A stretch of 64,000 nucleotides of DNA from Trichoplax adhaerens. Taxonomy: Eukaryota; Animalia; Placozoa. This document shows, piece after piece, positions 4,101-44,031 of the stretch. The translations under genes were made by a program, and so were the position numbers. The notes beneath the pieces were generated by a model that was given only the letters and a program-made list of their open reading frames with translations, was not told where the DNA came from and searched no databases. Positions within the stretch are counted from its first letter, which is position 1, and every line of letters begins with the position of its first letter. The stretch is taken from contig NW_002060951.1 of assembly GCF_000150275.1 (NCBI RefSeq), forward strand, positions 1,498,297-1,562,296. Reading direction: 5' to 3'.

Positions 4101-7100
4101 GCCGATATTACATGATTTGATTAACCATAACTTTATTCGTAATATATATTAATTAAGTGCATATTAAATATATGGTGGTACAAAATTAAATCAAATATGT
4201 CAACCTTTATTTGTTAACAAAGAGACTAAAATAGAGATTTGCTTTGGTTTATTATCTTATTCACTGTGTTCTCCAGTTCCAACGATAACTTTTGATGGGA
4301 TTCTCAGTTTTTCAATTTTTTTTTTCTAATGAGTCTCAATAAGCGTCTTAGGGGATGTGCTATTTACATTACAACGTTGTATCGGCATTAGTCTTAGGCT
4401 TGGAACCATTTCTACATAGTATATTAATCTAATCAATCTTTCGACAACTGAAAAGGAATTTATACTTCCGTTATCGTCATTGTAATATTAAATTTATTAG
4501 TTTAAGTATTGAATATTGCGTTATGTGCTGCTAAAAATTCCTTAACGCAACGTAATATGATTTAGGCTTACAAACTTGGCATGTATGGAGAAAACTATGC
4601 TTGGTTTGGCTCGATCTTTACACAGAGGTTATGGTGGAATCGCTTTGCACCATTAACTAACTGTTCAGCTTACGAAATCCTTCAAGTAGCCAAAGGTTAC
4701 ATAGCCTTTCGTAACACGAATGCTCCACTCCTTTCTGATTTTAACACAATGACCGCTCCGGGACTTGTAAGTTGCATATAACATGATACTTATTGATTAG
4801 GAATGATGAGCAAACCATGATTGAGCTCTATCTTTTAAAATCCGTAAATGTTTTGCTCTAATTTCGTAAAGTGACTAAACCATATTAAATTATAGGGTTT
4901 AGTAAGCTAATGCATAAAGTAATTATTGGTTGTAATTGTCTTTTACTATAATTCTTCTTATAGACATTTCAAGAATTCTTAGATAATTATGATAAATTTA
5001 CCAACACAACTCGAAGTAGTAGTGACGATTATCCGAATCCTTTGGCTTACGATTCATTATGGTGTCTTGCATCAGCTCTAAATGAAACAGATAATAAATT
5101 ACGGCAACTCAATTCAAGCCTCGCTGATTTTAAATACGACGCCAAGATAGCAGAAATATTCAATATTGCTATTCAAAAGACTAGTTTTTTAGGATTAACC
5201 GTATGTATAAAAGTGTAGATAAGACTTTATGATCTTTTTCTAGACGGATTCGTACGCACGATGATATCAATTAAATTGAGGATATAGTTGTAATAGTGTA
5301 CCATAATTGGTAATTCTATCCATACTTAGGAAAATTTGAATTTTAATGTTAATTCAAAAATTAATTATGATGAAACATTACCAAAGTACGAGTAGTAAAT
5401 TTCCTGATTTGGATCTTAAATAAATTATCTCTCATAAAAGGGTCCGTTCAGTTTTTCAAGTGGAGCAAGGGTTGGGAATGCCTATATACAGCAGTTCCGA
5501 GGTGAGAATAAGAATATAAATGATTTTTATACCTAGGGTAGATTTATAGTAATGTTAATGTACTGGCTGTAGAAATGATTTCTGATGTTAGCGAGCCGTT
5601 TAATCTATAATTGTTAGCGATTATAAATTTCTGCTGTGCGAGAATCTTTATAACATGATCTTAGTAATGTTACACTAAGTAAAAGAATGTGAGTAAATGG
5701 TTATTTTAATAGTTATCGTAATCGTAAATAATCCTATCATAGGCAATATTTCATCTACTGGATTAGTTGTGGTGGGATCGTATAGGAGTGTAGGTCAAGT
5801 GATAACTTTTAATGAAAGTGAACCACTTATTTGGCCAGGTATATTCCTTAAATTTTTTCCAATGGTTACCATCTATAATGAAGTGTATACTTTAGTTTTA
5901 ATCGTAAGTATTAAAATCTTTATTCCGCAGGGGGTCATGTTCCGTTCGATGGATTTATAACTAGCTACTTGGAAAAGTACATTACCATAGGGGTATTCGT
6001 TGCTATGTCAATTTTATCTGTGATTGGTATGATAGCTGCCCTTACATTTTTGTACATCAATTATTTGCATCGCAATTTGCGGTAAATGTCGTACTAGTAC
6101 ATCATATCATTTGGCCAATCTTGCAAATTGGCCTATAAAATTTATATTAAAGGGATAAATATACTCGATAACTTATCTCAACTGTTTTTAATTCGTTTAT
6201 GTTAGGGTTATCAAAATGTCAAGTCCAAGAATAAATAATCTCATATTAATTGGTTTTATATTATGCTTTGTGGCTGTTGTTATGTTTGGAGTAGACTCTG
6301 GTACAGTTAATAAAATCTATCTACCAGCGATTTGTACTGCTCGTGTTAGTCTATTATCTTTAGGATTTACACTATCATTCGGCGCTATGTTCGCTAAAAC
6401 TTGGCGAGTCCATGTTATTTTTACAAACAAGACGAGTACAAAAGTGGTAATTAACTTCTTTTTATTTAATTTAACTCGAATTTATTCGTATACTCTTGTT
6501 AAATAACATTTCATCATACTATACAGTAGTGTTTAGATCAAGATTTCGTATTCTATAATGCTAGTATAACAACGAAATAGCTTTACGATTCGATTAAAGT
6601 TAATTTACTAAAGTACTTTGATGTAATTTAATATATTATTAAAGGTTATCAAAGACCATTCTCTTTTTGGTTTAACATTCTTGTTATTTGTGGTTGATTT
6701 GATTATTTTGGGAGTATGGATAGCTATTGATCCGTTTACAGGTCAATATGAAAAGTTTACATCCTATGTAAGTTATTCTTATTATTTACAGTATATTAAA
6801 TTTAAACGGTCGCATAAATTTTATTGTATTTAATAGAAGTAATAATCAATTATTTATTATAAATTTGTTGAATGTTTGTACTTTATTTAAATAATAGCCA
6901 TCTAAGCTTGGATCCAATATTATTATACAACCGCAAACGATGATTTGCAGTTGTCAGTATAGTTCTATTTGGCTAGCAATTATCTACGGATATAAATTTC
7001 TGTTACTTGTATTTGGTACATTTTTGGCATGGGAGACACGAAGTGTTTCGATTGCAGAATTAAACGATTCTCGTCATATTGGATTAGCTATCTATAACGC

Positions 7101-7565
7101 TGTTATATTCGCAACAATCGGTGTATTAGTGGGTCAATTGACACAAACTGGTATAGATGGAGGATATATTATTAATTCGTCATTTATACTAATTTGTGCG
7201 ACATCTAGTATGTGTCTTTTCTTTATACCGAAGGTAAGGATAACTATACTAAGCGTAAATAGAGATTTCGAGATTGCCTTGGTACTGTAGCTATAAGCAA
7301 TAAATTTTAGATTAAAATATTGGAAGAGTTAATGTAAGGTTTATTTATAATTAATCGATTACTATATTATACTGATTTGTGAACTTTTCATTTATTATGT
7401 TGTGTTTCTTAGATTCAGCTTATCAGAAGCTCGAACTATTCTATATTGTCAATGCGCACTAGAGAATCACTTCGAAGACCTCAATCAACTTTGTTCCAAG
7501 TTAATGGCGGAAGCACTAAAAGACAGATGACTGGAAATGGCTCTCAAGTAGATAGTTTAGCCTAA
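1186..7565 (+). CDS. GABA-B receptor-like class C GPCR, paralog 1 (signal peptide, Venus flytrap domain, GB2-like 7TM, short tail), ~775 aa
   Basis: 14 in-phase GT-AG exons: 1186-1437, 1557-1694, 1782-1952, 2138-2239, 2662-2727, 4566-4766, 4964-5200, 5441-5501, 5743-5838, 5931-6081, 6206-6446, 6645-6767, 6898-7233, 7413-7565 (2328 nt). Family motifs: ARYWNLIQLS, FGWKRVA, PLAYDSLW, IKMSSPRINNLI, FGAMFAKTWRVH, YGYKFLLLVFGTFLAWETR, LNDSRHIG, FFIPK. Confidence 0.93.
3514..3840. repeat. Diverged tandem duplication (~182-bp unit, 2 copies) in intron 5 of paralog 1
   Basis: ctcgtattatca(a/g)tattcta...gctattatt...agcttttaataacggtctt...agat(c/t)gccattg occurs at 3514 and again at 3696. Confidence 0.8.
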
Positions 7566-25400: not shown

Positions 25401-27934
25401 TCTTTTATAATTACAACCGGTGCGTAAAATTAGTATTAGAGTCCAAGTGTTCAATGCCAACATTTCTCGTATTTCTTCTGTCGCATTAGGATGCTACTAT
25501 AAAATTATTGACTTTATGATGAAATTGTAGCGACATTGTCCTCAACATATGTCATGTCATGTAGTATAACAATGCATTGTTATTCTAGTAAAGTCTTAAA
25601 AATCTTTTGCCATTTGATATTATGCTTTAAATAGGCAATATTTCAGCATTCGGTCTGGTTAAAGTTGGTTTTTATAACAGCAGCAGCAGAGAATTAAGTT
25701 TCAACGAGACAGATCGTCTTATGTGGCCAGGTTATTTGATTCTTATTTATAAATAATACCAAAGACTACTAGAAAATCTAATTTTTCCGTAACCCATAGT
25801 TATCTGTACATTAGTATGTTGCTGCATGATTTTATGAAACTGTTATACACAAAAGCATGGTGAAATATCTATTCAATATATTTACTGTATGACTTTTGCT
25901 TTATATTGTATAATACAGGAGGACGCGTTCCAGTCGACGGATTTGAAACTAAATTTGAAGAGAATTATATTACATGTGGACTATTTATAATAGTAACGAT
26001 TTTATCTGTAGTTGGAATTGTGACTGCAATGGCATTTTTACTTATCAACTTTAGACATCGAGAGTTACGGTAATTTGATTTGCATCCATTTTTAAATGAA
26101 ATCACATAAATTTGATTATTCGATTACAAATTAACAAAATATTATTTCTTTGTATTGCCTTAGGGTTATTAAAATGTCTAGTCCTAGAATTAACAATCTA
26201 ATATTGCTTGGCTTTATATTTTGCTACGCCGATGTTGTCTTGTTTGGAGTAGACTATGGTATAACGAAACAGGAATATCTCCCTACAGTTTGTACCGTTC
26301 GTGTTGGCTTATTGTGTATAGGATTTACACTATCATTCGGTGCAATGTTTGCTAAAACTTGGCGCGTTCATGTTATCTTTACAAACAAGACAAATACAAA
26401 AGTGGTAATAAAAATCATTTTAATTTTTATATCACTATTAGATGAAAGAGAGAGTGAAAATATGCGAGAGCAAATTCTTGAGTTCCTAAATACTAAGTTA
26501 TTGTTTACAGATTGTATGATGGCATGATTAAATATATATGTGATATCAAGTATGACGGTTAAATTGTAATTAAATAGGGAGCGATTAAATTATTGAAGAA
26601 AACAATCATATCGATGTTAATCAATTTTGTGTCTACGCTTGAACAAGAAAGTCTTAGCTAATTTCATTATTGTTGATAAAATAATTTTCAAATCTAGTAG
26701 ATTTAATAAACTTTTTGGATATTAAAAATTACGAATTGATAATTATAGGTAATCAAAGATTCTTCGCTCTTTGGGATAACTAGTATCCTATTAATAATTG
26801 ATTTTATCATTTTGGCTGTATGGATATCAATCGATCCGTTTATAAATCGATATCAATCAATTTCATCATCTGTAAGTTGATATTACATAAAGTTCGGTAT
26901 TATTCTATGAAGTATATATGTTATATATAACCTAGGAAGTAGTAGACATAATCGATAATAATTAAGTGTCTTCGATGGCAGCTACGCATATTAGAAAGAG
27001 GCACCGTAATCATTTTAACTTAGTACTCTATTAATTAATGTATTATTGCGTAAAAGAAATTTGGTAGGGTAGATTCGATATTTAATCCAATAAATTTTAA
27101 TAATTAATTACCTTATTGTGACGTAGAAGGAAGTTGGATGTAATATACGAGCATTAAAGCGAGTTACGATATATTCATGTAATAATGGCTGTGTCAGTGT
27201 ATATTGTGATACTTTTTGGTTTTTGTTTGTTATGATTATTATCACGATAGTCGTCAAGTCCTGGATCGAATATCATTATACAACCGCGGACACTAGTTTG
27301 TAGTTGTCAACATATTTCTGTTTGGTTGGGGGTCGTCTATGGGTATAAATTCTTATTGCTTGTTTTCGGTACATTTTTGGCATGGGAAACTCGAAATGTT
27401 TCGATAGCGGAATTGAATGATTCTCGTCATATTGGATTAACTATTTATAATGCGGTTATGTTTGCAACTATTGGGGTATTAGTGAGCCAGCTAACACAAA
27501 CGACTGTAAATGGAGGATATATCATTATATCGGCATTTATCTTAATTTGTACGACATCCAGTATGTGTCTATTCTTTATACCGAAGGTAAATATATAAAA
27601 GATATTTCTATTATGTAAATGAACCAACTTCAACTGCAACTCGATGGGTTATTTTCCAGTTATCTCAAATAAAAATTTCTATTGTATTATATAATATTAA
27701 TATTAATAGTTAATGGGTATCTCTTGATTAAAATTAGATTATTGACTAATATTCATTCAAATATTATCTAAGATTCAACTTATCAGAAACGCAAATTTTT
27801 CGATCATTTCTGGACGACCTACAAGACCATCAGCAATTCAACGTCCTCGTCCGAGTGTAGTAAACACTAAAATAATTATACCAGAAATATCGAAGAATGT
27901 ATCTATAAAGCAACCTGCTGAACAGAATTTGTAA
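19401..27934 (+). CDS. GABA-B receptor-like class C GPCR, paralog 2, ~777 aa
   Basis: Same 14-exon structure and phases as paralog 1: 19401-19652, 19767-19904, 20033-20203, 20397-20498, 20960-21025, 23508-23708, 24378-24611, 24940-25000, 25635-25730, 25919-26069, 26164-26404, 26749-26871, 27251-27586, 27773-27934 (2334 nt). The same family motifs are present. Confidence 0.93.
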
Positions 27935-31042: not shown

Positions 31043-31531
31043 CCAGGTCTAGTGGATTGCTATTTTGCAGGATGACGCAGCAGTACTGTATGAGGCTACA
31101 GTGGATAGGCAATACTGTACACTGCATTTTACATTGGAATGCGTCAACGCTTTTTCGATGACCGATGACCTGATGATGATGGCTAGTACTGGCACTACTT
31201 TCAGTCTACGCTATACATATACCTTACCTACAGTGTACAGTATGGAACAGTGTACTTGGACAGATGAAAAACTGGACTATCCAATCCCCAGGTCTAGTGG
31301 ATTGCTATTTTACAGGATGACGCAGCAGTACTGTGTGAGGCTACAGTGGATAGGCGATACTGCACAGTGCATTTTGCATTGGAATGCGTCAATGCTTTTT
31401 CCATGACCCATGACCTGATGATGATGGTTAGTGCTGGCAATACTTTCAGTCTACGCTATACATATACCTTACCTACAATGTACAGTATGGAACAGTGTAC
31501 TTTGACAGATTAAAAACTGGACTATCCAATC
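31043..31531. repeat. Recent tandem duplication (245-bp unit, 2 copies) upstream of PTGR1
   Basis: ccaggtctagtggattgctatttt...actggactatccaatc occurs at 31043 and 31288 in near-identical form. Confidence 0.9.
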
Positions 31532-35087: not shown

Positions 35088-36179
35088 GCGATTTGTTGCT
35101 GAATTCAGTTGCATTAAACATCATCAGTATTTCATTCTTATAGTTAGAGGAACTTGACCTAGATTTTATAATAGGAGCAAAGCCAAATAGTATAATAGCT
35201 ACTGAAGGTTCAGACACTACTGTTTGCGATATTAACGATTATTGCTTACTGCATGATATAACAACGATTGCCCATATTGTATTTTGAACAATGATTCGCA
35301 ATTTTTCATAAACGATTACTTTGTAAGTCTTAGACACTTCATTTTTACTTGAAGAAGGATGGCAATTGATCGTAGGAATTAAATAAATTCTAGAATAATG
35401 CAATGACATGATACATTTCGTGATTAATTTTTATGGTTAAACTATTGGCGTCTTACTGTCATTTTTACTGCTTGTAAAGATAATCAAAAATCATGTTGCA
35501 TGAATAGAAAAATTGTTGTGATAACGATATAATATTGAAAAGGCTCTCCATACACTGCACTGTAGCATAAGAATGCGGTGATTTGATCTATCATGTAGTT
35601 AAAGTAAGTACTGATGTTGTGTTATGAAGAGAAATTCTAGTTGTGATGTTAATATTCTGGATAGAAATGACAGCGCTATATTCACATGAGTGAGCATTTT
35701 ACTTACTTAGTTACCCTAATGACAAACAAAACAATGATGTTAGAGTGTAGGTCTGACAGTAGCGTACCTGCAGTATACAGTTGGTATAAATACAGTAGTG
35801 ATAACAACGAAAAAGAGCATACATGTAATTATAGTAACAATCAGATTTCAATCTTTACTGATTCTATATGAGAGCTAATCATATACGATAGAGAAATTTA
35901 TAGTATTCTTTTATCTCTTCTTTAAAAGTGCCATGATACTAGACACATTTGTAACTTTTAGAATACATACTTAATTACTGAGATACGATATTTTAATATC
36001 AAAAATGTTGATAGCTTTATTAATTTTTAATATGATCCGGAATCAATTAAATTTTCATGGCATGACGCGTGCTATAAATTTTGTTATTGATTTGTAGAAG
36101 GCTGAATAAGACTTTAAAAAAACAAGTTATATAGGAATTCACATAACGCGTAAACAGATTTTGAACTCGTAATAAATGT

Positions 36180-39100
36180 ATACGTAAGAATTGCGCAACT
36201 TATTGGGTTTGAAGTAGTGGGATGCCTTTTGAATCATGTTTTTTCACTGACCACTGGCCCTACGTGATGGATCCGTCGGTGTACTGTACTGTGATTGTAT
36301 TTTTGTGACGTACTTACATTAATTAATATAACATCGTATTCGAACATCCTTTCTCATAGACAGTGTAGTGTCTTGCTAGATTTATCATACTATTTAATCT
36401 GTGAATAGCTTGAGCAATAATATTATGGAAAGAATGTAAAGACGTATTAGATATTTGTAACACAATTAACTTCAAAATCAAAAATTGGCGTAGTATCTTG
36501 GTTACTGATAGCTATAGACACTAAAAGTTGACCGGTGATGTAATTAAGAATGGACAGACTATTATTTTACATTTAAGATAAAAACATGAAATAACAATAT
36601 GCTAGGTTGATATTGTACTCAGAAATTTATATAAGTTTTAAATTACTATAGATTACATGGAGCTTCCATTAGACTCATTTATTTATTATACTGAAAAATG
36701 AGCTTGATAGCAATGGTAGAATATCCGTCTTAATATCAAATATAGTAAAAAGTTTTACTAATTCCTCCAACCTGTCTTGAAGTCTGGCTATACAATTTGT
36801 TTGTAACGATAATCATGATCAGTATTTATAGGAGTACATCCCACATGGATGTATCACTTGTAGAATATTTATATTATGATCTCAAGTATTAACTATTCGT
36901 ATGAGTTCGCCTTATAAGATATCTCTTATAATATAAGGCTGCACTAGACTGCAGTTTCTTAATAATCAGATTTCTAAGGAATATAATGCTCTTTCTTTCG
37001 TATCATAAGATCACAATTTACACCATGTCATGTCTAAACCTGTTGACATTATCGCAGTGTTCATAGCTTATTTACGATATTCAGTAATATAAGCTACGAT
37101 TTCGAAGTATACTATAATTATGAATTATTACCATCTTATCATTTAAGAAGGTGAATTGAAAGAAATACTTTATGATGTGCAAGGATTATCTTCATAAAAC
37201 TATGGATATTTAATAATGAGTCCAAACTATAGATATTAAGATAATATGAATAATAGTTAGTATACATTTTGCCTGCTTAGATGTAAATATTTTACTGTTG
37301 TATGTATATTGCATATATTGTTATATAGGCAAAGCTTGCATAAGTTTTTAAAATTATTAATAAACGCAGGGAACAATTTATTTACTTGCCTTACAAGTTA
37401 TTATAAGTATAGTGCGTTTGTTGGAGAAGGAAAACATAAAAGAAAAAATTTTCGTTCGGCGATTCAATTTAAGGACGGAACTCAATAATTGATAATTTTT
37501 GTATCATTAATTAATTAATTATGGTGAAAGCGAAGACTATTATCGACATTAAAATTAATTATAGCTATTGTGAATAGATCAAATAAACAGATAATATAAC
37601 AAACCGGACTAATGTCATCAAGTGCCTTTAGTGCCTCGAAAATATTCTACTTGCTTAGATTACCAAATCGAACTCATACTGAATCTGAATACATAGCTTG
37701 TCCTTCAGGTTAAAATTTTGCGCCATGTGCGATATTAAGCTATAGTATGTCTTAAAGTGTTCAACTTTAAAGGCAATTTTGTAAATTTTCATTAGCTTGT
37801 ATTTTTATGTTTCGGAAATATTTCCATCTACTTAAATTATGAATTGGAGGTACACTATTGGACATATGGCATGTCTCTCATATCAGAATTTTGAACTATG
37901 CATAGTATTATTGTACAGTATATTGAAATGAATATAAGATTGTTGATCTCGTTATTTATTACAAGGAGTGTGAGCCCATTCTAGTGCAATATGGCCAGAT
38001 AGCTAATATGGTATTCATAAATTACAAATATTAATTCTAACTAATATCGTATTAGTGATAGTGTGATCTCTTTTATTAAGATTTCCAGGAACGAAGATTA
38101 TTAAACGTCATAGTTCATACTGCTTTGAACTATTATTCAATATAGTAACCACATAGGGAGAGAATTTCAGTATACTATCAATAAAATTTTCGATTTCCAT
38201 ACGACTTCATCGTACAATTCACACAGGATTCAATACCACACTTCATACAGTAATTTTGTTGTTTACTGCATACCGTACTGTATGTGCAAATTATATTTGA
38301 TGTTATTTTAGTCTTATAAAATCAAATATTTGAAACAATAGCCATTTTCCTAAATATTTTTTGTCATCTAGTATTTTAATAACATATAGTTGGGTATCTT
38401 AGATACTTTGTAGTAGAACCTGCGAGTGGTAATGTCTTGTTTATTTATGTTGATAATAATTTTATGATTGGACTGAGTATAAGGCTTTCAGCAGACGTAA
38501 ATGGCTATCGTTGTTATTGCTAAGATAGAAGACCACTTTGATTATCGTGCTAGCTGTATTCTCCAATCAAACAGAGACTTGTAGTTGTTATTGATGAACA
38601 AATTCAATATCCAACCGATTACCACAACGTCAGTAAGAGTTAAAGTTCATTCTGCGATATACGTTCTTGAAATAATTTATATTAACCTTGTCAAAGTTGA
38701 ATTTTTCAGTTTTCTGATTAACTACTGTACCTTGAATCGATTTTTGCTTCACACCCTAAATTATAAGGTATTGATATTGCATTTAAATATGTATATGAAA
38801 GGCTATAACATTAACTGAGATGAAGAACAATTGCCTAAAATCTTATTCGATTATCACTTTAATTTTCTTTCCTCTATCCACTAATTATTATCGTAAAGTT
38901 ATATGCCAAGTTTAATATTGATTGTTTTACTGTAATATGTCAGCTGTAGCCTACCCAGGTAAAATATTAATTTTAGGATTGATTAAATTTATCATATTTT
39001 TCTATCTTGCGAGCTTTTTTCTGACTATTTCAATGATAAGTCTTGGAAAACGATATTTACTTTCCTCTATTCATAAAAGAGTTAAATTACTGTAAATAAC

Positions 39101-40955
39101 ATTTTTATAAATTCATATTGTAATTATAAATCCTATTAAATGTGTGAATTAATGATTAAAATTTTAGAATAGGCATCGCCTAAAACTTAGCTCGCTAATA
39201 TAAAGTTTGATATATTGGGATAAAGAAATGAAATAATCGTATCTTCTTTTTGTTAATGCTTTATGCTCAAGCTGCTTGGTCAGAGCTACAAAATGCATTC
39301 CAAGTGGATAACATTGGCAATTGTACTATTACTTGCCTTTGGCAATATTTGTGAGTCTCGATTTTTATCGAAACCAAAGAGTAATAAGACGGCTAATAAT
39401 GATGAAAATAAGCACAATCCAATAACAAATGGCACTAATTCGTATGATGAAGAGGAAGAAAGCGATGGAGGGATGAGATCTTTATTAGATTGGCTAAAGG
39501 ATATACTATTTGGTAACAAAAACGGTAACCGAATAGATAAATTTAAGGATTGGTTGAAGGATCGCTACAATAGGACTGGTAATATGGAGGATTATGATGA
39601 AGGTGACTTTTTTGATGGGGATGATAAAGAATATGAAGATGAAGGGGAAGATTTTGAAGGTATAGATGAAAGTAAAGATGAAGAGGAGATTGGGGGTGCG
39701 GACGAAGAGAACGAAGATGAGGATGATGAGGAGTGGTCCTGGAATTGGCCATGGGGAGACGACGGCGAAGAAGAAGAAGAAGAAGAAGAAAGAGAGCTCG
39801 AAGACACTGATAAAGATAGCGAGGAAAGTTCAGAAAGTTGGAATATGTTTAATGACCTATTTGAATTCTTTACCGGCTCATCCGAGGGTGACAATGACGA
39901 CAAACAAGTCGATAAGGAAGACAAAGATAGGTATGATGATAATGAAGAGGATCGCCATGAAGATGATGATGCTTATGAAGGTGAAGGCGAATATAATGAA
40001 GATGAAGATGATGAATATTACGATGATGAAGATGAGAATGAAGAAGATAGAGAGGAAATAAATAATGGAGAAGCGGAAGAGAAAGAACTAGAAGAAGAAG
40101 CAGAAGAATTAGAAGAAAAATTAAGCGGCGATAAAGGAGAAGAAGAAGAAAATAAAAGTTTCTGGGATTTCTTCTTTTAATTTCTCTAGAAGGTGTAGTC
40201 GTGGAATGAGATAAAGATTCTCTGAAAGAAGACTATCCAAAATAAATAAAAACTAAGAATGACTACATTAGTAGTTGATCATTCTATTAATTATAAAATC
40301 CATTATAACTAAGATGATTATTTTTAGATTGGAGGTAGCAAAAATCAAGAATGCTTAGATGACAACTGCTTCATCTAATTAATTTGTGAAATGAAGTGTA
40401 AATTTTATCAATAGACATTGGCATCAATAAATGAATGAATAGACATTGATTTAAGGCATCTCTCCGCAATTGCTATGATTAAGCTCAATATTCTATTTAT
40501 TCAGTCAGCGAGAAAGATGAATTTCTTTTGGAAAAATTACGCTATTCTGGCATTTTATAGTAATGATTGCAGTACTTATTCCAGTGGATGAGAATAAGAA
40601 GTTTAAGCCAGCCATTAATATAATACGGATATAGCTAATATTGCAAACAGCGTAATTAAAACAAGTACGAACTTTCTAATAATTAATACCGCATGATATG
40701 TGCAATTATACTCTTAGTTTGAGTTTAAGCTGCTAGTGCTATTAGCTGGCATAGCATTATCCATATTTTGCCGTCAATGTTATTATCTCTTACTATCGCA
40801 TTTACTAACAACATTTTATTTCATTTTTTAGCTTTACCAAACTTGAGCTGCTATTAAATAACATTCGGGCATTGATACTAGTTTGGCAATAATTACATGC
40901 GGATATTTGTATTGTGCAACAGCTTAGCGTAGTTGTATCAACAAAATATCGCATT
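36180..40955 (+). pseudogene. Decayed GABA-B-like paralog relic (psi-C), interrupted by the acidic-protein gene
   Basis: Strongest part is 40718-40955: FEFKLLVLLAGIALSIFCR vs YGYKFLLLVFGTFLAWETR (TM5), IAFTNNILFHFLALP vs LAIYNAVIFATIGVL (TM6), GIDTSLAIITCGYLYCATA* vs GIDGGYIINSSFILICATS (TM7), joined by frameshifts. Weaker upstream pieces in order: LKNELDSNG..KSF at 36691 (exon 4), ECEPI..IWP at 37966-37998 (exon 9), LSS/FNNI*LGIL at ~38360 (exon 11), KDEFL..WM.I at ~40513-40595 (exon 12). Confidence 0.55.
39293..40180 (+). CDS. Uncharacterised intronless secreted Asp/Glu-rich protein with aromatic amphipathic motifs (~295 aa)
   Basis: Single open frame. MHSKWITLAIVLLLAFGNICES is a typical signal peptide (an in-frame upstream ATG lies at 39263). 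The mature part is about 43% D+E by hand count and has no Cys. Motifs DWLKD x2, WSWNWPWG, WNMFNDLFEFF and C-terminal FWDFFF. AATAAA follows the stop (~40241). Confidence 0.85.
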   Translation: MHSKWITLAIVLLLAFGNICESRFLSKPKSNKTANNDENKHNPITNGTNSYDEEEESDGGMRSLLDWLKDILFGNKNGNRIDKFKDWLKDRYNRTGNMEDYDEGDFFDGDDKEYEDEGEDFEGIDESKDEEEIGGADEENEDEDDEEWSWNWPWGDDGEEEEEEEERELEDTDKDSEESSESWNMFNDLFEFFTGSSEGDNDDKQVDKEDKDRYDDNEEDRHEDDDAYEGEGEYNEDEDDEYYDDEDENEEDREEINNGEAEEKELEEEAEELEEKLSGDKGEEEENKSFWDFFF

Positions 40956-43070
40956 CTACAGTTGCTCCTCGTACACGTTTATAACTATTTTATTAAGTTC
41001 GAATCACATAAGCCCTATTTTCTTTTCATAGTTATGCCGAAATAAGCTAACATCTTCTGCACCGTGATTACAAGAAATTATTGTCTTTGTCATATAATTC
41101 AGTACGACAGTATCATAGGTTCTTTATCCATCGAATTTGATTATCATTGCATGGTTAATTTAAATTCCTATCTGTTACTGTATAAATTATTAATTTTTAG
41201 TCAATCAGTTAGCGAGTCAGTTATTTTTAGATAGAGCTGATTGCAATATATATATTCGTATATTACATGTAGTTGAATAATAATTAATTAACATAAACCA
41301 TCGTTGTGCTACTAGTATCAGGTGATATGCTGTAGTTTACTAATGTTAGCTTTGTTAACTACTAATATATAGTTAATACTTGACCGTCTAGAAGTGTCAG
41401 TGGCTCTTATACTGAACCTTTTATTATTTCAGTCTTGTATGAATCAATTATAGTTACATAAGTAATTATTATTTATACTGTAGTTATGAAGTTGCCCAAT
41501 ATTTATACCGGACCGCATCGGGCATTTATAGAAAATTTTAGCTTAAGCGGGTAGACAAAAGCTACAGCAAGATCTACCGATTAATTAATTTAATTATCTT
41601 CAGTACTGTACGTGAGAAATTGTATCTATTGATGCTTTAATTGTGATTATAGAGGACTTTATTACTCTCATAGATTGAAGAAAATGTAATTGCATTTATA
41701 TGCTGCATATACAAGGACTCAGCGTCCAGACAATATTTAAAAGATTTACATTAATTAATACACAACTGCGGAATTATAATGCATATTTTTCGTTCACTTG
41801 TTGAAACTGTTCAGGCAAAGTAGTTTTAACAAACTGTGTTAAAAGTTTACAGTAAGATAATTGTTTCTAAATTGTATCTTACCTGCCTGTACAGTAGTTA
41901 TTCGGATCAATAGTTAAAACAATTCAAGTAAGTGAAGGAGTAGCTAAAGGGCAGTTTCTAAATTTGGACCCTAGTTGGTGTTGATACTGTTACATAAATC
42001 GAATATCAGCTGGAACTATTCTATATGCGTATTTAAAACTCTTGAAATACTGAGTAGTAAGAAATAATTAGTACAGTCTTGATGATACAGTATTAGTAAA
42101 TGATCATGTGGAGGTGACATTACTTGTACATTTCTGTAGGTTCGTTTAACGTCCAGTTTTTCTTTCCTTTTTTTCAACTGTGACTTTTGGGGTGTTTTGA
42201 CACTGTGACAACTTTTTGGCTTTTGGGGTGAAACTTTATCTGTAGGCGTACCTATTTAGACCATTTATTAGGACTGTTAAGTATTATAAGTAATTTTTAT
42301 TTAATTAAATCTTGAATAAGATGACTTTTAGCAGGATTGCTCAATATTTGAGGAGTCTTCGAACTATTCAGTATATTAAAAATTTTTCAAATGATCAATG
42401 GTTTCCTGCTGTCGGTTCCTCTGAAACGTTATATTAGTACTATAGTACCGATAATGATAAAGAAATTGTACCTAATATTAGCGTTGACTGTATACTTTAT
42501 ATATAGTACATAACTTAGACCAAAGCATACAAGCTATGAAACTCTGCTATGGCTTTCCTTTATCAATGATTGATTTTGAGTCACTGCCCTACACATGAGA
42601 GAGTATGGAGGAAAGAATCAGAGCACACCAATTTATTATTTAAGTTGCTTTTTCTTTTTTACCGTACTTTCAATCGGCCCTACTATCAAGTAATGGCAGT
42701 AGTACTGTGTAGTCCCAGAATAGATCATGTTTGGGACAGAAGTAATTGATGTAATTAGGAGAATTTAACAAGAAATAGAAATCTTCATATTTAAGAGACA
42801 GTTTATGGAGAGCAGAATTGTAATGAATGAAGTCAACATTAACATCAAGCAAATGGCTGCCATGGTCCTAGCCTCAATTTGCGGACAGATCTTGCCTATC
42901 CAATGAATGGATGTGTTATGCGTTATGCTTTAGTGTGCCTTTGACACACTGGAGCAAGTCCAGTGCATCATTTCTTTCCTACTGAATAAGTACTGAATTA
43001 TAGCACTCTTACCGATACTGCATAAGCAAGTTACAAGATCGTAAATCATATTATTAGATGTTATGGTGTC

Positions 43071-43121
43071 TTTAGGGTTAGGAATCGAATTTAGGGGGCA
43101 GGTGAGGGTTGGTTAGGGTTT
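43071..43121 (+). repeat. Degenerate TTAGGG-like tract
   Basis: tttagggttagg..ttaggggg..gagggttggttagggttt lies just left of the MITE array. Confidence 0.45.
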
Positions 43122-43148
43122 ACTTTTATCAATAAAGAACGACTTCTT

Positions 43149-43424
43149 GTAAGCAATTTCGCACGGGTTGCAATCCCTCGTGGCACCAGGGATTGCACTC
43201 GGGTTTTCCATACTCGGGTAGAATACCCGGGCACCCGAGCAATTTTAAATATTGATGGCATGAAACGGGATACCCTGGTAAGCAATTTCCCAAGGGTTGC
43301 AATCCCTCGTGGCACCAGGGATTGCACTCGGGTTTTCCATACTCGGGTACCCGAGCAATTTTGATATTGATGGTATGAAACGGGGGTACCCGGGTAACCC
43401 ATTTTCCACTGCTTGCAATCCCTA
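43149..43424. mobile_element. Tandem array of a hAT-like MITE (TIR AGGGATTGCA/TGCAATCCCT)
   Basis: TGCAATCCCT at 43169, 43298 and 43414; AGGGATTGCA at 43188 and 43317. The identical 9-bp spacer cgtggcacc lies between units (43179, 43308). Internal CTCGGGTA/TACCCGGG palindromes are present and the period is 129 bp. Confidence 0.7.
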
Positions 43425-44031
43425 ATGCCAAACGAGTGAGTGCATACAGGGACAGCAAATTTTTTTAGTCTTTTTTCTCGGAAAGGAGGAAAAATGGAAA
43501 CATTGCTTCGTAGCCTCCACTAGTCCCCACTGCACACTAGGGGTCTCTAGTGCTGACTACTAGAAAAAAGGAAAGAAACCTTTTTCTAGTCTACTTGTTA
43601 TTACGGCTTTAAAATAATAATATTGTACACTACAGTCTACTGGTGCTTAATAAGTTGTTCACTGCGGCAGTGGATAGGTGACGCCATTACACTCTTCCAC
43701 TTTCGCTAGTCCTTTTTTTACTCCCGTCAGTTACAGTACTGTACATTGTAACATAGACTGCTACTGTACAGTAGAAAGAGGATTGACTGCCACATCATTA
43801 TTCCAGTCATTCCACTCTATGCTCTCGCGGAAACCGTATGCCATACAGCTAGATAGGAAGGCTCTCTATTTTTAGTACTGTACACTACAGTATATTGTAC
43901 TGAGCCGTTGTTTGCTGTCTCACTCTTTTCTTTTTAGTTGTTTCCGGCTATCCGTACCTTCCGTACCTTACCTCGACGATCTGTATTGACAAATGGATCA
44001 CTTGTAGGTTGATCAAGTTAATCATATCGAT

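Follow-up and report, generated by a model that had tools for sequence, protein, structure and literature searches.

In a 64,000-nucleotide stretch of the Trichoplax adhaerens genome (contig NW_002060951.1, positions 1,498,297 to 1,562,296 of the forward strand; hereafter the window), we identified a genuine, intact, single-exon gene whose product, referred to here as the acidic protein, belongs among the secreted polyanionic disordered proteins. The gene is already known in the sister strain Trichoplax sp. H2, where its orthologue is annotated as a 'hypothetical protein'. By analogy with granins, our favoured interpretation, to which we assign a probability of about 0.4, is that the acidic protein may serve as a lineage-restricted luminal matrix or packing polyanion of regulated secretory granules, binding Ca2+ or cationic cargo, with its aromatic helices serving for association or for contact with membranes.

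The open reading frame (ORF) starts with an ATG at 39293, continues uninterrupted for 295 codons and terminates with a TAA at 40178-40180, in exact agreement with the coordinates given in an earlier, first-pass annotation of the window. Its principal features at the level of the gene are as follows.

39293..40180, plus strand: acidic-protein coding sequence, complete and single-exon, 295 amino acids (aa) followed by TAA
39767..39790, plus strand: (GAA)8, sole pure triplet microsatellite of the gene, encoding Glu8 and extended by one unit in Trichoplax sp. H2

This is the longest ORF in the window, which has a G+C content of 32% (68% A+T) and in which the next independent ORFs span 113-125 codons. 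Several lines of evidence indicate that it did not arise by chance: the longest open run among 2000 shuffles of the ORF nucleotides averaged 52 codons and never exceeded 118, compared to the 295 observed; GAN codons downstream of the signal sequence number 117 of 273 in frame, whereas the two remaining frames contain 9 and 13; and the acidic runs are short, being written with mixed GAA, GAG, GAT and GAC codons rather than as simple repeats. Two further long open stretches overlap the gene (39666-40061 on the plus strand in another frame, and 39592-39924 on the minus strand), and we regard these as by-products of its purine-rich triplet bias.

Comparison of the window with a 20.9-kb locus of Trichoplax sp. 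H2 (99.1% identity) placed the orthologue at the syntenic site, where it forms a stand-alone single-exon gene between genes encoding a zinc-type alcohol-dehydrogenase-like protein and an Elongin-A/Med26 protein, all on the same strand. Its product, 'hypothetical protein TrispH2_005750' (RDD42119.1), shares 294 of 296 positions with the acidic protein, the two ORFs differing by one GAA unit and two substitutions, of which that at 39638 is non-synonymous (Asp to Asn) and that at 39646 synonymous. As the H2 genome was annotated by MAKER with the support of transcript assemblies, both de novo and genome-guided (PMC6057997), the existence of this model provides indirect support for transcription of the gene. 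That the model consists of a single exon also argues against the ORF being one exon of a larger gene, a possibility raised in the first-pass annotation.

From the sequence of the predicted product, a signal peptide, five aromatic blocks, an additional helix and a tyrosine-rich acidic tract were delineated, each on the plus strand.

39293..39358, plus strand: signal peptide, residues 1-22, with n-region MHSK, h-region WITLAIVLLLAF and c-region GNICES
39470..39511, plus strand: aromatic amphipathic helix 1, residues 60-73 (…LLDWLKDILF), helical in the AlphaFold2 model, hydrophobic moment 0.57
39530..39577, plus strand: aromatic amphipathic helix 2, residues 80-95 (…FKDWLKDRY…), helical in the AlphaFold2 model, hydrophobic moment 0.43, including RYNR
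39734..39757, plus strand: Trp block WSWNWPWG, residues 148-155, non-helical in the AlphaFold2 model, with acidic runs on either side
39833..39874, plus strand: aromatic helix 3, residues 181-194 (…WNMFNDLFEFF…), helical in the AlphaFold2 model
39932..40042, plus strand: Tyr-in-acid tract, residues 214-250, with five Tyr and 7-9 Asp/Glu per centred 11-residue window
40070..40126, plus strand: Glu/Leu/Ala helix, residues 260-278, helical in the AlphaFold2 model, with a/d-like spacing of A270, L273 and L277 read from the sequence
40142..40177, plus strand: C-terminal aromatic block, residues 284-295 (…NKSFWDFFF), forming the end of the protein

Assigned from its n/h/c anatomy together with hydropathy, the signal peptide proposed in the first-pass annotation was upheld. 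Over 12 residues the Kyte-Doolittle maximum reaches 2.81 within this sequence compared to 0.79 elsewhere, making it the sole hydrophobic segment of the protein, and the -3/-1 rule allows possible cleavage after G17 or S22. Use of a second in-frame ATG, at 39263 (30 nt upstream), would extend the product by ten residues, lengthening only the n-region. The only cysteine, C20, lies in the c-region, such that the earlier description of the protein as cysteine-free applies to a chain cleaved after S22 and not to the precursor. A KDEL-type retention signal is absent from the C-terminus (…FWDFFF). Given this n/h/c signal sequence, with its 12-residue core, and the lack of a KDEL-like terminus, the acidic protein is predicted to enter the secretory pathway by way of a cleavable-type signal peptide and to proceed beyond the endoplasmic reticulum.

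Acidic residues dominate the composition of the protein, comprising 118 of the 295 residues of the precursor (40.0%) and 117 of residues 23-295 (42.9% of 273; 68 Glu and 49 Asp), consistent with the approximately 43% initially reported. Since Lys and Arg contribute only 9.8%, the computed net charge is approximately -89 at pH 7.4 and -83 at pH 5.5, with a pI of about 3.5. As previously noted, dibasic pairs (KK, KR, RK or RR) are absent from the entire protein; spaced basic motifs were found at residues 80-83 (RIDK), 91-94 (RYNR) and 276-281 (KLSGDK), of which RYNR appears the most convertase-like. We compared three further attributes highlighted in the first-pass annotation with shuffled sequences. 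Tyrosines in an acidic context were clearly over-represented (8 of 9, compared to 3.9 in shuffles; P=0.006), and those of the Tyr-in-acid tract are candidate sites of sulfation or cation binding; a search of the T. adhaerens genome for a TPST-type sulfotransferase domain, conducted exon by exon and hence insensitive, returned none. Four N-x-S/T sequons are indeed present (N31, N46, N93 and N287), although their excess over the 1.7 of shuffles is not significant (P=0.08). The S-x-E sites, previously linked to phosphorylation by Fam20C, also exist, but their number (3) matches chance expectation (3.7), and an insensitive exon-by-exon search of the genome, lacking a positive control, detected no Fam20C domain (PF06702) even at E<=10.

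All five aromatic motifs described earlier were recovered, at residues 64-73, 84-92, 148-155, 183-193 and 290-295. Tryptophan and phenylalanine are strongly clustered, with 12 pairs occurring within three residues of one another compared to a mean of 4.7 in shuffles, a count of 12 or more being reached in 0 of 5000 shuffles. In an AlphaFold2 model, generated from the single sequence without an alignment, helices are restricted to residues 3-24, 60-73, 80-95, 181-194, 260-278 and 284-294, which correspond to the signal peptide, every aromatic block except WSWNWPWG, and the single Glu/Leu/Ala helix. A DWLKD core is common to the helices at 60-73 and 80-95. In this model the mature chain is accordingly mostly disordered outside five short aromatic or hydrophobic blocks, four of which are predicted to form amphipathic helices. 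Together, the confinement of helices to these blocks and the clustering of Trp and Phe suggest that the aromatic residues constitute five discrete modules set between polyanionic linkers. The first-pass view of a secreted-type, polyanionic and largely disordered protein is thus retained, but its 'sticker-spacer' architecture is not, the aromatics being bunched into five blocks, four of them helical in the model, instead of spread along the chain.

DNA patterns representing WSWNWPW and FWDFFF-stop each occur once in the genome, in numbers equal to those of reversed-pattern controls. One genomic match to the Trp-motif pattern with a single mismatch was rejected as a paralogue, as it corresponds to a GGCATT simple repeat beside a transposase-like ORF. 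At this site (L003, G000:C1408:3655230-3660250, at approximately 2343-2885), a (GGCATT)n repeat adjoins a 131-aa ORF on the minus strand that appears to encode a transposase-like helix-turn-helix N-terminus.

In agreement with the first-pass annotation, which recognized no family, searches for relatives of the acidic protein identified the H2 orthologue as the only one. No Pfam family matched at E<=10; a word-indexed search of 5.8 billion clusters yielded nothing beyond the orthologue; and an exhaustive phmmer search of 1.84 billion representatives, without restriction on length, retrieved the orthologue alone. Neither a sequence search of the PDB, nor queries of the ESM Atlas with the whole protein and with residues 23-100, nor a search of JGI metagenome contigs produced a match, and a six-frame search of the T. 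adhaerens genome itself (105.6-Mb assembly, 1414 contigs) revealed no paralogue. These results pertain to databases in which the presence of Hoilungia and Cladtertia proteomes was not confirmed. Orphan secretory proteins of placozoans may also share as little as ~34% identity between genera (PMC12013895), which, combined with the strong compositional bias of the acidic protein, means that an orthologue of such divergence in another placozoan genus would escape detection. Judged by sequence comparison, then, the acidic protein appears to have no recognizable family, no detectable homologue outside Trichoplax and no paralogue. Literature full texts contain no mention of the gene identifier, accession or motif strings, and the same identifiers are absent from those parts of the supplements of Najle 2023, Mayorova 2025 and Gruber-Vodicka 2019 that were covered.

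With homology uninformative, likenesses to known systems were drawn from composition and architecture. The granins (chromogranin A/B and the secretogranins; PF01271) are similarly equipped with a signal peptide, Glu-rich, very acidic, largely disordered and routed through the secretory pathway, and aggregation in response to Ca2+ and low pH may be proposed for the acidic protein as well. They differ in sharing no sequence similarity with it and in possessing dibasic sites, an N-terminal disulphide loop and cysteines in the mature chain, whereas the acidic protein is far more acidic (43%) and confines its aromatics to discrete helical blocks. Coral CARPs and SAARPs, mollusc Aspein and Asprich, and fish Starmaker are likewise secreted, disordered, polyanionic and lineage-restricted, and a mineral target is present in Trichoplax too in the form of aragonite statoliths; here again homology is lacking, and the Trichoplax protein favours Glu over Asp without enrichment of S-x-E. 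Placozoan and cnidarian peptide preprohormones (FFNPamide, WPPF, MFPF, LF, PRWamide and YYamide, among others) also combine a signal peptide with acidic residues preceding segments that end in an aromatic, and the C-terminal …FWDFFF resembles F-ended placozoan peptides, but the acidic protein is far longer and more acidic, and lacks tandem copies and Gly-Arg or Lys-Arg sites. Among arminin-like antimicrobial peptide precursors of Trichoplax and Hydra, a signal peptide is followed by a highly acidic region in a protein of similar size (150-250 aa), the acidic part serving to neutralize a cationic amidated C-terminal peptide with a terminal Gly (PMC12013895); the acidic protein, by contrast, has no cationic region, carries a mature-chain charge of about -89 and ends in …FWDFFF. 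The orphan gland-cell proteins Ta 63786, Ta 60437, Ta 63996 and Ta 64037 share the features of a signal peptide, absence of domains and lineage restriction, although Ta 63996, reported to be basic and helical, has the opposite charge (PMC12013895). It is to this class of placozoan orphan gland-cell secretory proteins, likened by description only, that the acidic protein would most plausibly belong.

Under our favoured interpretation, the acidic protein would be made by some gland or peptidergic cell type, entering the secretory pathway without being retained in the endoplasmic reticulum. At neutral pH and low Ca2+, its charge would hold the chain expanded and soluble; within the Ca2+-rich and mildly acidic lumen of the trans-Golgi or granule, Ca2+, cationic cargo such as the arminin-like peptides produced in placozoan epithelia, or both could screen the carboxylates, upon which the Trp/Phe helices would associate with one another or with the granule membrane, and the contents would condense. 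The excess of Glu over Asp and the acid-embedded tyrosines place the protein closer to granins and luminal Ca2+ buffers than to the Asp-rich matrix proteins of CaCO3, and amphipathic aromatic helices are of the kind that sorts and aggregates granule proteins. Each gland cell type in placozoans is marked by lineage-restricted secretory proteins without known domains, and cationic arminin-like peptides are abundant in placozoan secretory cells (PMC12013895). Several observations weigh against this interpretation. Neither dibasic sites nor the disulphide loop, both typical of granins, is present and Pfam Granin (PF01271) gave no match, such that any resemblance would be by analogy and not by descent. 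The AlphaFold2 model is of low confidence, with a mean predicted local distance difference test (pLDDT) score of 51 and a predicted template modelling (pTM) score of 0.19. Over 19 residues, the hydropathy maximum of 1.64 is borderline for a membrane anchor. Finally, at 99.1% locus identity with two substitutions and one indel, purifying selection between the two Trichoplax strains is not measurable.

The same features could be accommodated by a propeptide precursor with its acidic tracts for spacers, from which at least one of the aromatic blocks is freed as a bioactive peptide, although we consider this unlikely. Tested placozoan peptides start with Asp or Glu and end with an aromatic residue (EDDLPGMFPF, EDQQNKPYNGWPPF, DDSQDGYALF and DYDDYYY-amide; Varoqueaux preprint 10.1101/360925), and N-terminal processing at acidic residues is a trait of placozoans and cnidarians (PMC9545775); Asp or Glu does precede every aromatic block of the acidic protein, as is trivially expected at 43% acid. 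The candidate breaking the fewest rules is a free C-terminal peptide (…NKSFWDFFF or SFWDFFF), which requires no C-terminal cut, while among the spaced basic motifs described above a cut at RYNR(94) could free an N-terminal two-helix module. However, repeated peptide copies and dibasic or Gly-basic sites are lacking, and the 273 residues at 43% acid far exceed the needs of a spacer in both length and acidity. The case for the 'WNWPW-amide released at acidic residues' of the first-pass annotation is weakened by the sequence around WPW, where Asp-Asp comes directly after Gly155. Among cnidarians and placozoans, peptides are flanked by acidic residues on their N-terminal side, and C-terminal processing is classical, proceeding at Gly followed by a basic residue (PMC9545775). 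Also, systematic screens gave only twelve placozoan preprohormones (review, PMC9545775), 0 of the 11 peptides named in the preprint (10.1101/360925) derive from the acidic protein, and its motifs and identifiers go unmentioned in literature full texts. Decidedly unlikely, in our assessment, is a role as biomineral matrix protein of the crystal cell, concentrating Ca2+ and controlling the nucleation and aragonite polymorph of the intracellular statolith, for which coral acid-rich proteins, mollusc Aspein and fish Starmaker would be the functional analogues. The signal peptide and an Asp/Glu content of 43%, where coral and mollusc acid-rich proteins exceed about 30%, are consistent with such a role, as is orphan status, which is usual among acidic biomineral proteins, and aragonite-bearing crystal cells without a known matrix protein occur in Trichoplax and Hoilungia (PMC5771587; PMC10954788). 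Against this stand the chance frequency of S-x-E, the failure of a Fam20C domain to turn up in the genome (by a search without positive control), and the absence of any coral or mollusc acidic protein among the exhaustive phmmer matches. The predominance of Glu (68) over Asp (49) further weakens the biomineral proposal of the first-pass annotation, CaCO3 matrix proteins being typically Asp-rich. Moreover, crystal cells are found in all placozoans studied, yet no orthologue was detectable in another genus, a weak argument as Hoilungia proteins were not confirmed in the databases. The more specific proposition, that the acidic protein is the organic matrix or Ca2+-concentrating protein of the crystal-cell aragonite statolith and an independent Starmaker-like polyanion, we regard as quite improbable.

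If instead released to act outside the cell, the protein could form part of mucus or adhesive, chelate divalent cations, or lend anionic assistance to external digestion or defence, none of which would require it to condense granules. Placozoans digest externally and their ventral gland cells secrete many orphan proteins (PMC12013895), and the four N-glycan sequons are compatible with this alternative, but their excess is not significant (P=0.08) and the sequence bears no sign of mucin-like (Ser/Thr/Pro-rich) or adhesive chemistry; we consider this explanation unlikely. Confinement to two near-identical Trichoplax genomes, the lack of a paralogue or of any mention in the literature, and the immeasurability of selection might instead reflect a young lineage-restricted ORF that has little or no function or is untranslated. 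We doubt this strongly, given an ORF of 295 codons in a 32% G+C genome as opposed to 118 or fewer in shuffles, its strict GAN periodicity and mixed synonymous codons, a well-formed signal peptide, patterned amphipathic helices and an evidence-based gene model in H2. Were the hydrophobic segment not cleaved, the protein could be anchored in the membrane by its N-terminus, exposing to the cytosol an acidic, Trp-rich tail that binds the appendages of vesicle coats. Positive charges are more numerous after than before this segment, consistent with such a topology together with its 19-residue hydropathy of 1.64, and EEWSWNWPWGDD, WNMFND and FWDFF presumably resemble coat-binding short linear motifs; acidic W-x-W, W-x-x-F and F-x-D-x-F motifs are reminiscent of COPI and AP-2 ligands. 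A hydrophobic core of only 12 residues followed by a small-residue c-region is, however, typical of a cleaved signal peptide, and makes this topology very improbable.

Beyond the coding sequence, possible signals of transcription and polyadenylation flank the gene.

39199..39204, plus strand: TATAAA, a possible TATA box 89 nt before the ATG at 39293; weak evidence in a genome of 68% A+T
40241..40250, plus strand: two overlapping AATAAA hexamers 61-70 nt past the stop, a possible polyadenylation signal; weak evidence in an A+T-rich genome

Elsewhere in the window, class-C G-protein-coupled receptor transmembrane exons (Pfam 7tm_3) occur at 6940-7290 (plus strand, E 1e-19) and 26150-26527 (plus strand, E 2e-19), such that a minimum of two genes or copies of metabotropic-glutamate-type receptors precede the acidic-protein gene. 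No 7tm match was obtained by Pfam in ten open pieces flanking the acidic-protein gene, and a tblastn comparison of open pieces from window positions 1-31000 with positions 35101-44000 gave marginal matches only (E 0.001-0.009), near 36277-36405. Upstream of the alcohol-dehydrogenase-like gene, a 245-bp unit is present in two tandem copies of 93% identity (31043-31531), an arrangement also found in Trichoplax sp. H2. Just downstream of the same gene, a 66-aa open piece (35671-35868, plus strand) yielded a sub-threshold immunoglobulin match (Ig_3 E=0.0017, 19 bits compared to a cut-off of 30) and may represent an unannotated or decayed immunoglobulin exon. Also identified was a G+C-richer region at approximately 43146-43423, comprising two tandem copies of ~130 bp that are ~83% identical, in which several frames stay open on both strands (ORFs reaching 142 aa); ARAGORN detected no tRNA in this region, which lies upstream of the Elongin-A gene and may be a short interspersed repeat.

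Placozoan behaviour, feeding and defence are conducted through secretory cells, several types of which are defined by orphan secreted proteins, and the acidic-protein gene offers a convenient probe target by which the producing cell type could be located. With a charge of -89, a mature chain free of cysteine, and five aromatic modules, the protein provides a clean natural test case, which could reveal the means by which, in an early-branching animal lacking any granin homologue, a polyelectrolyte of the lumen packs granule cargo or templates mineral. If production proves to take place in crystal cells, the gene would make the placozoan statolith accessible at the molecular level, and a statolith matrix protein, if such it is, would represent the first molecular part known of a gravity sensor in an animal without nerves.

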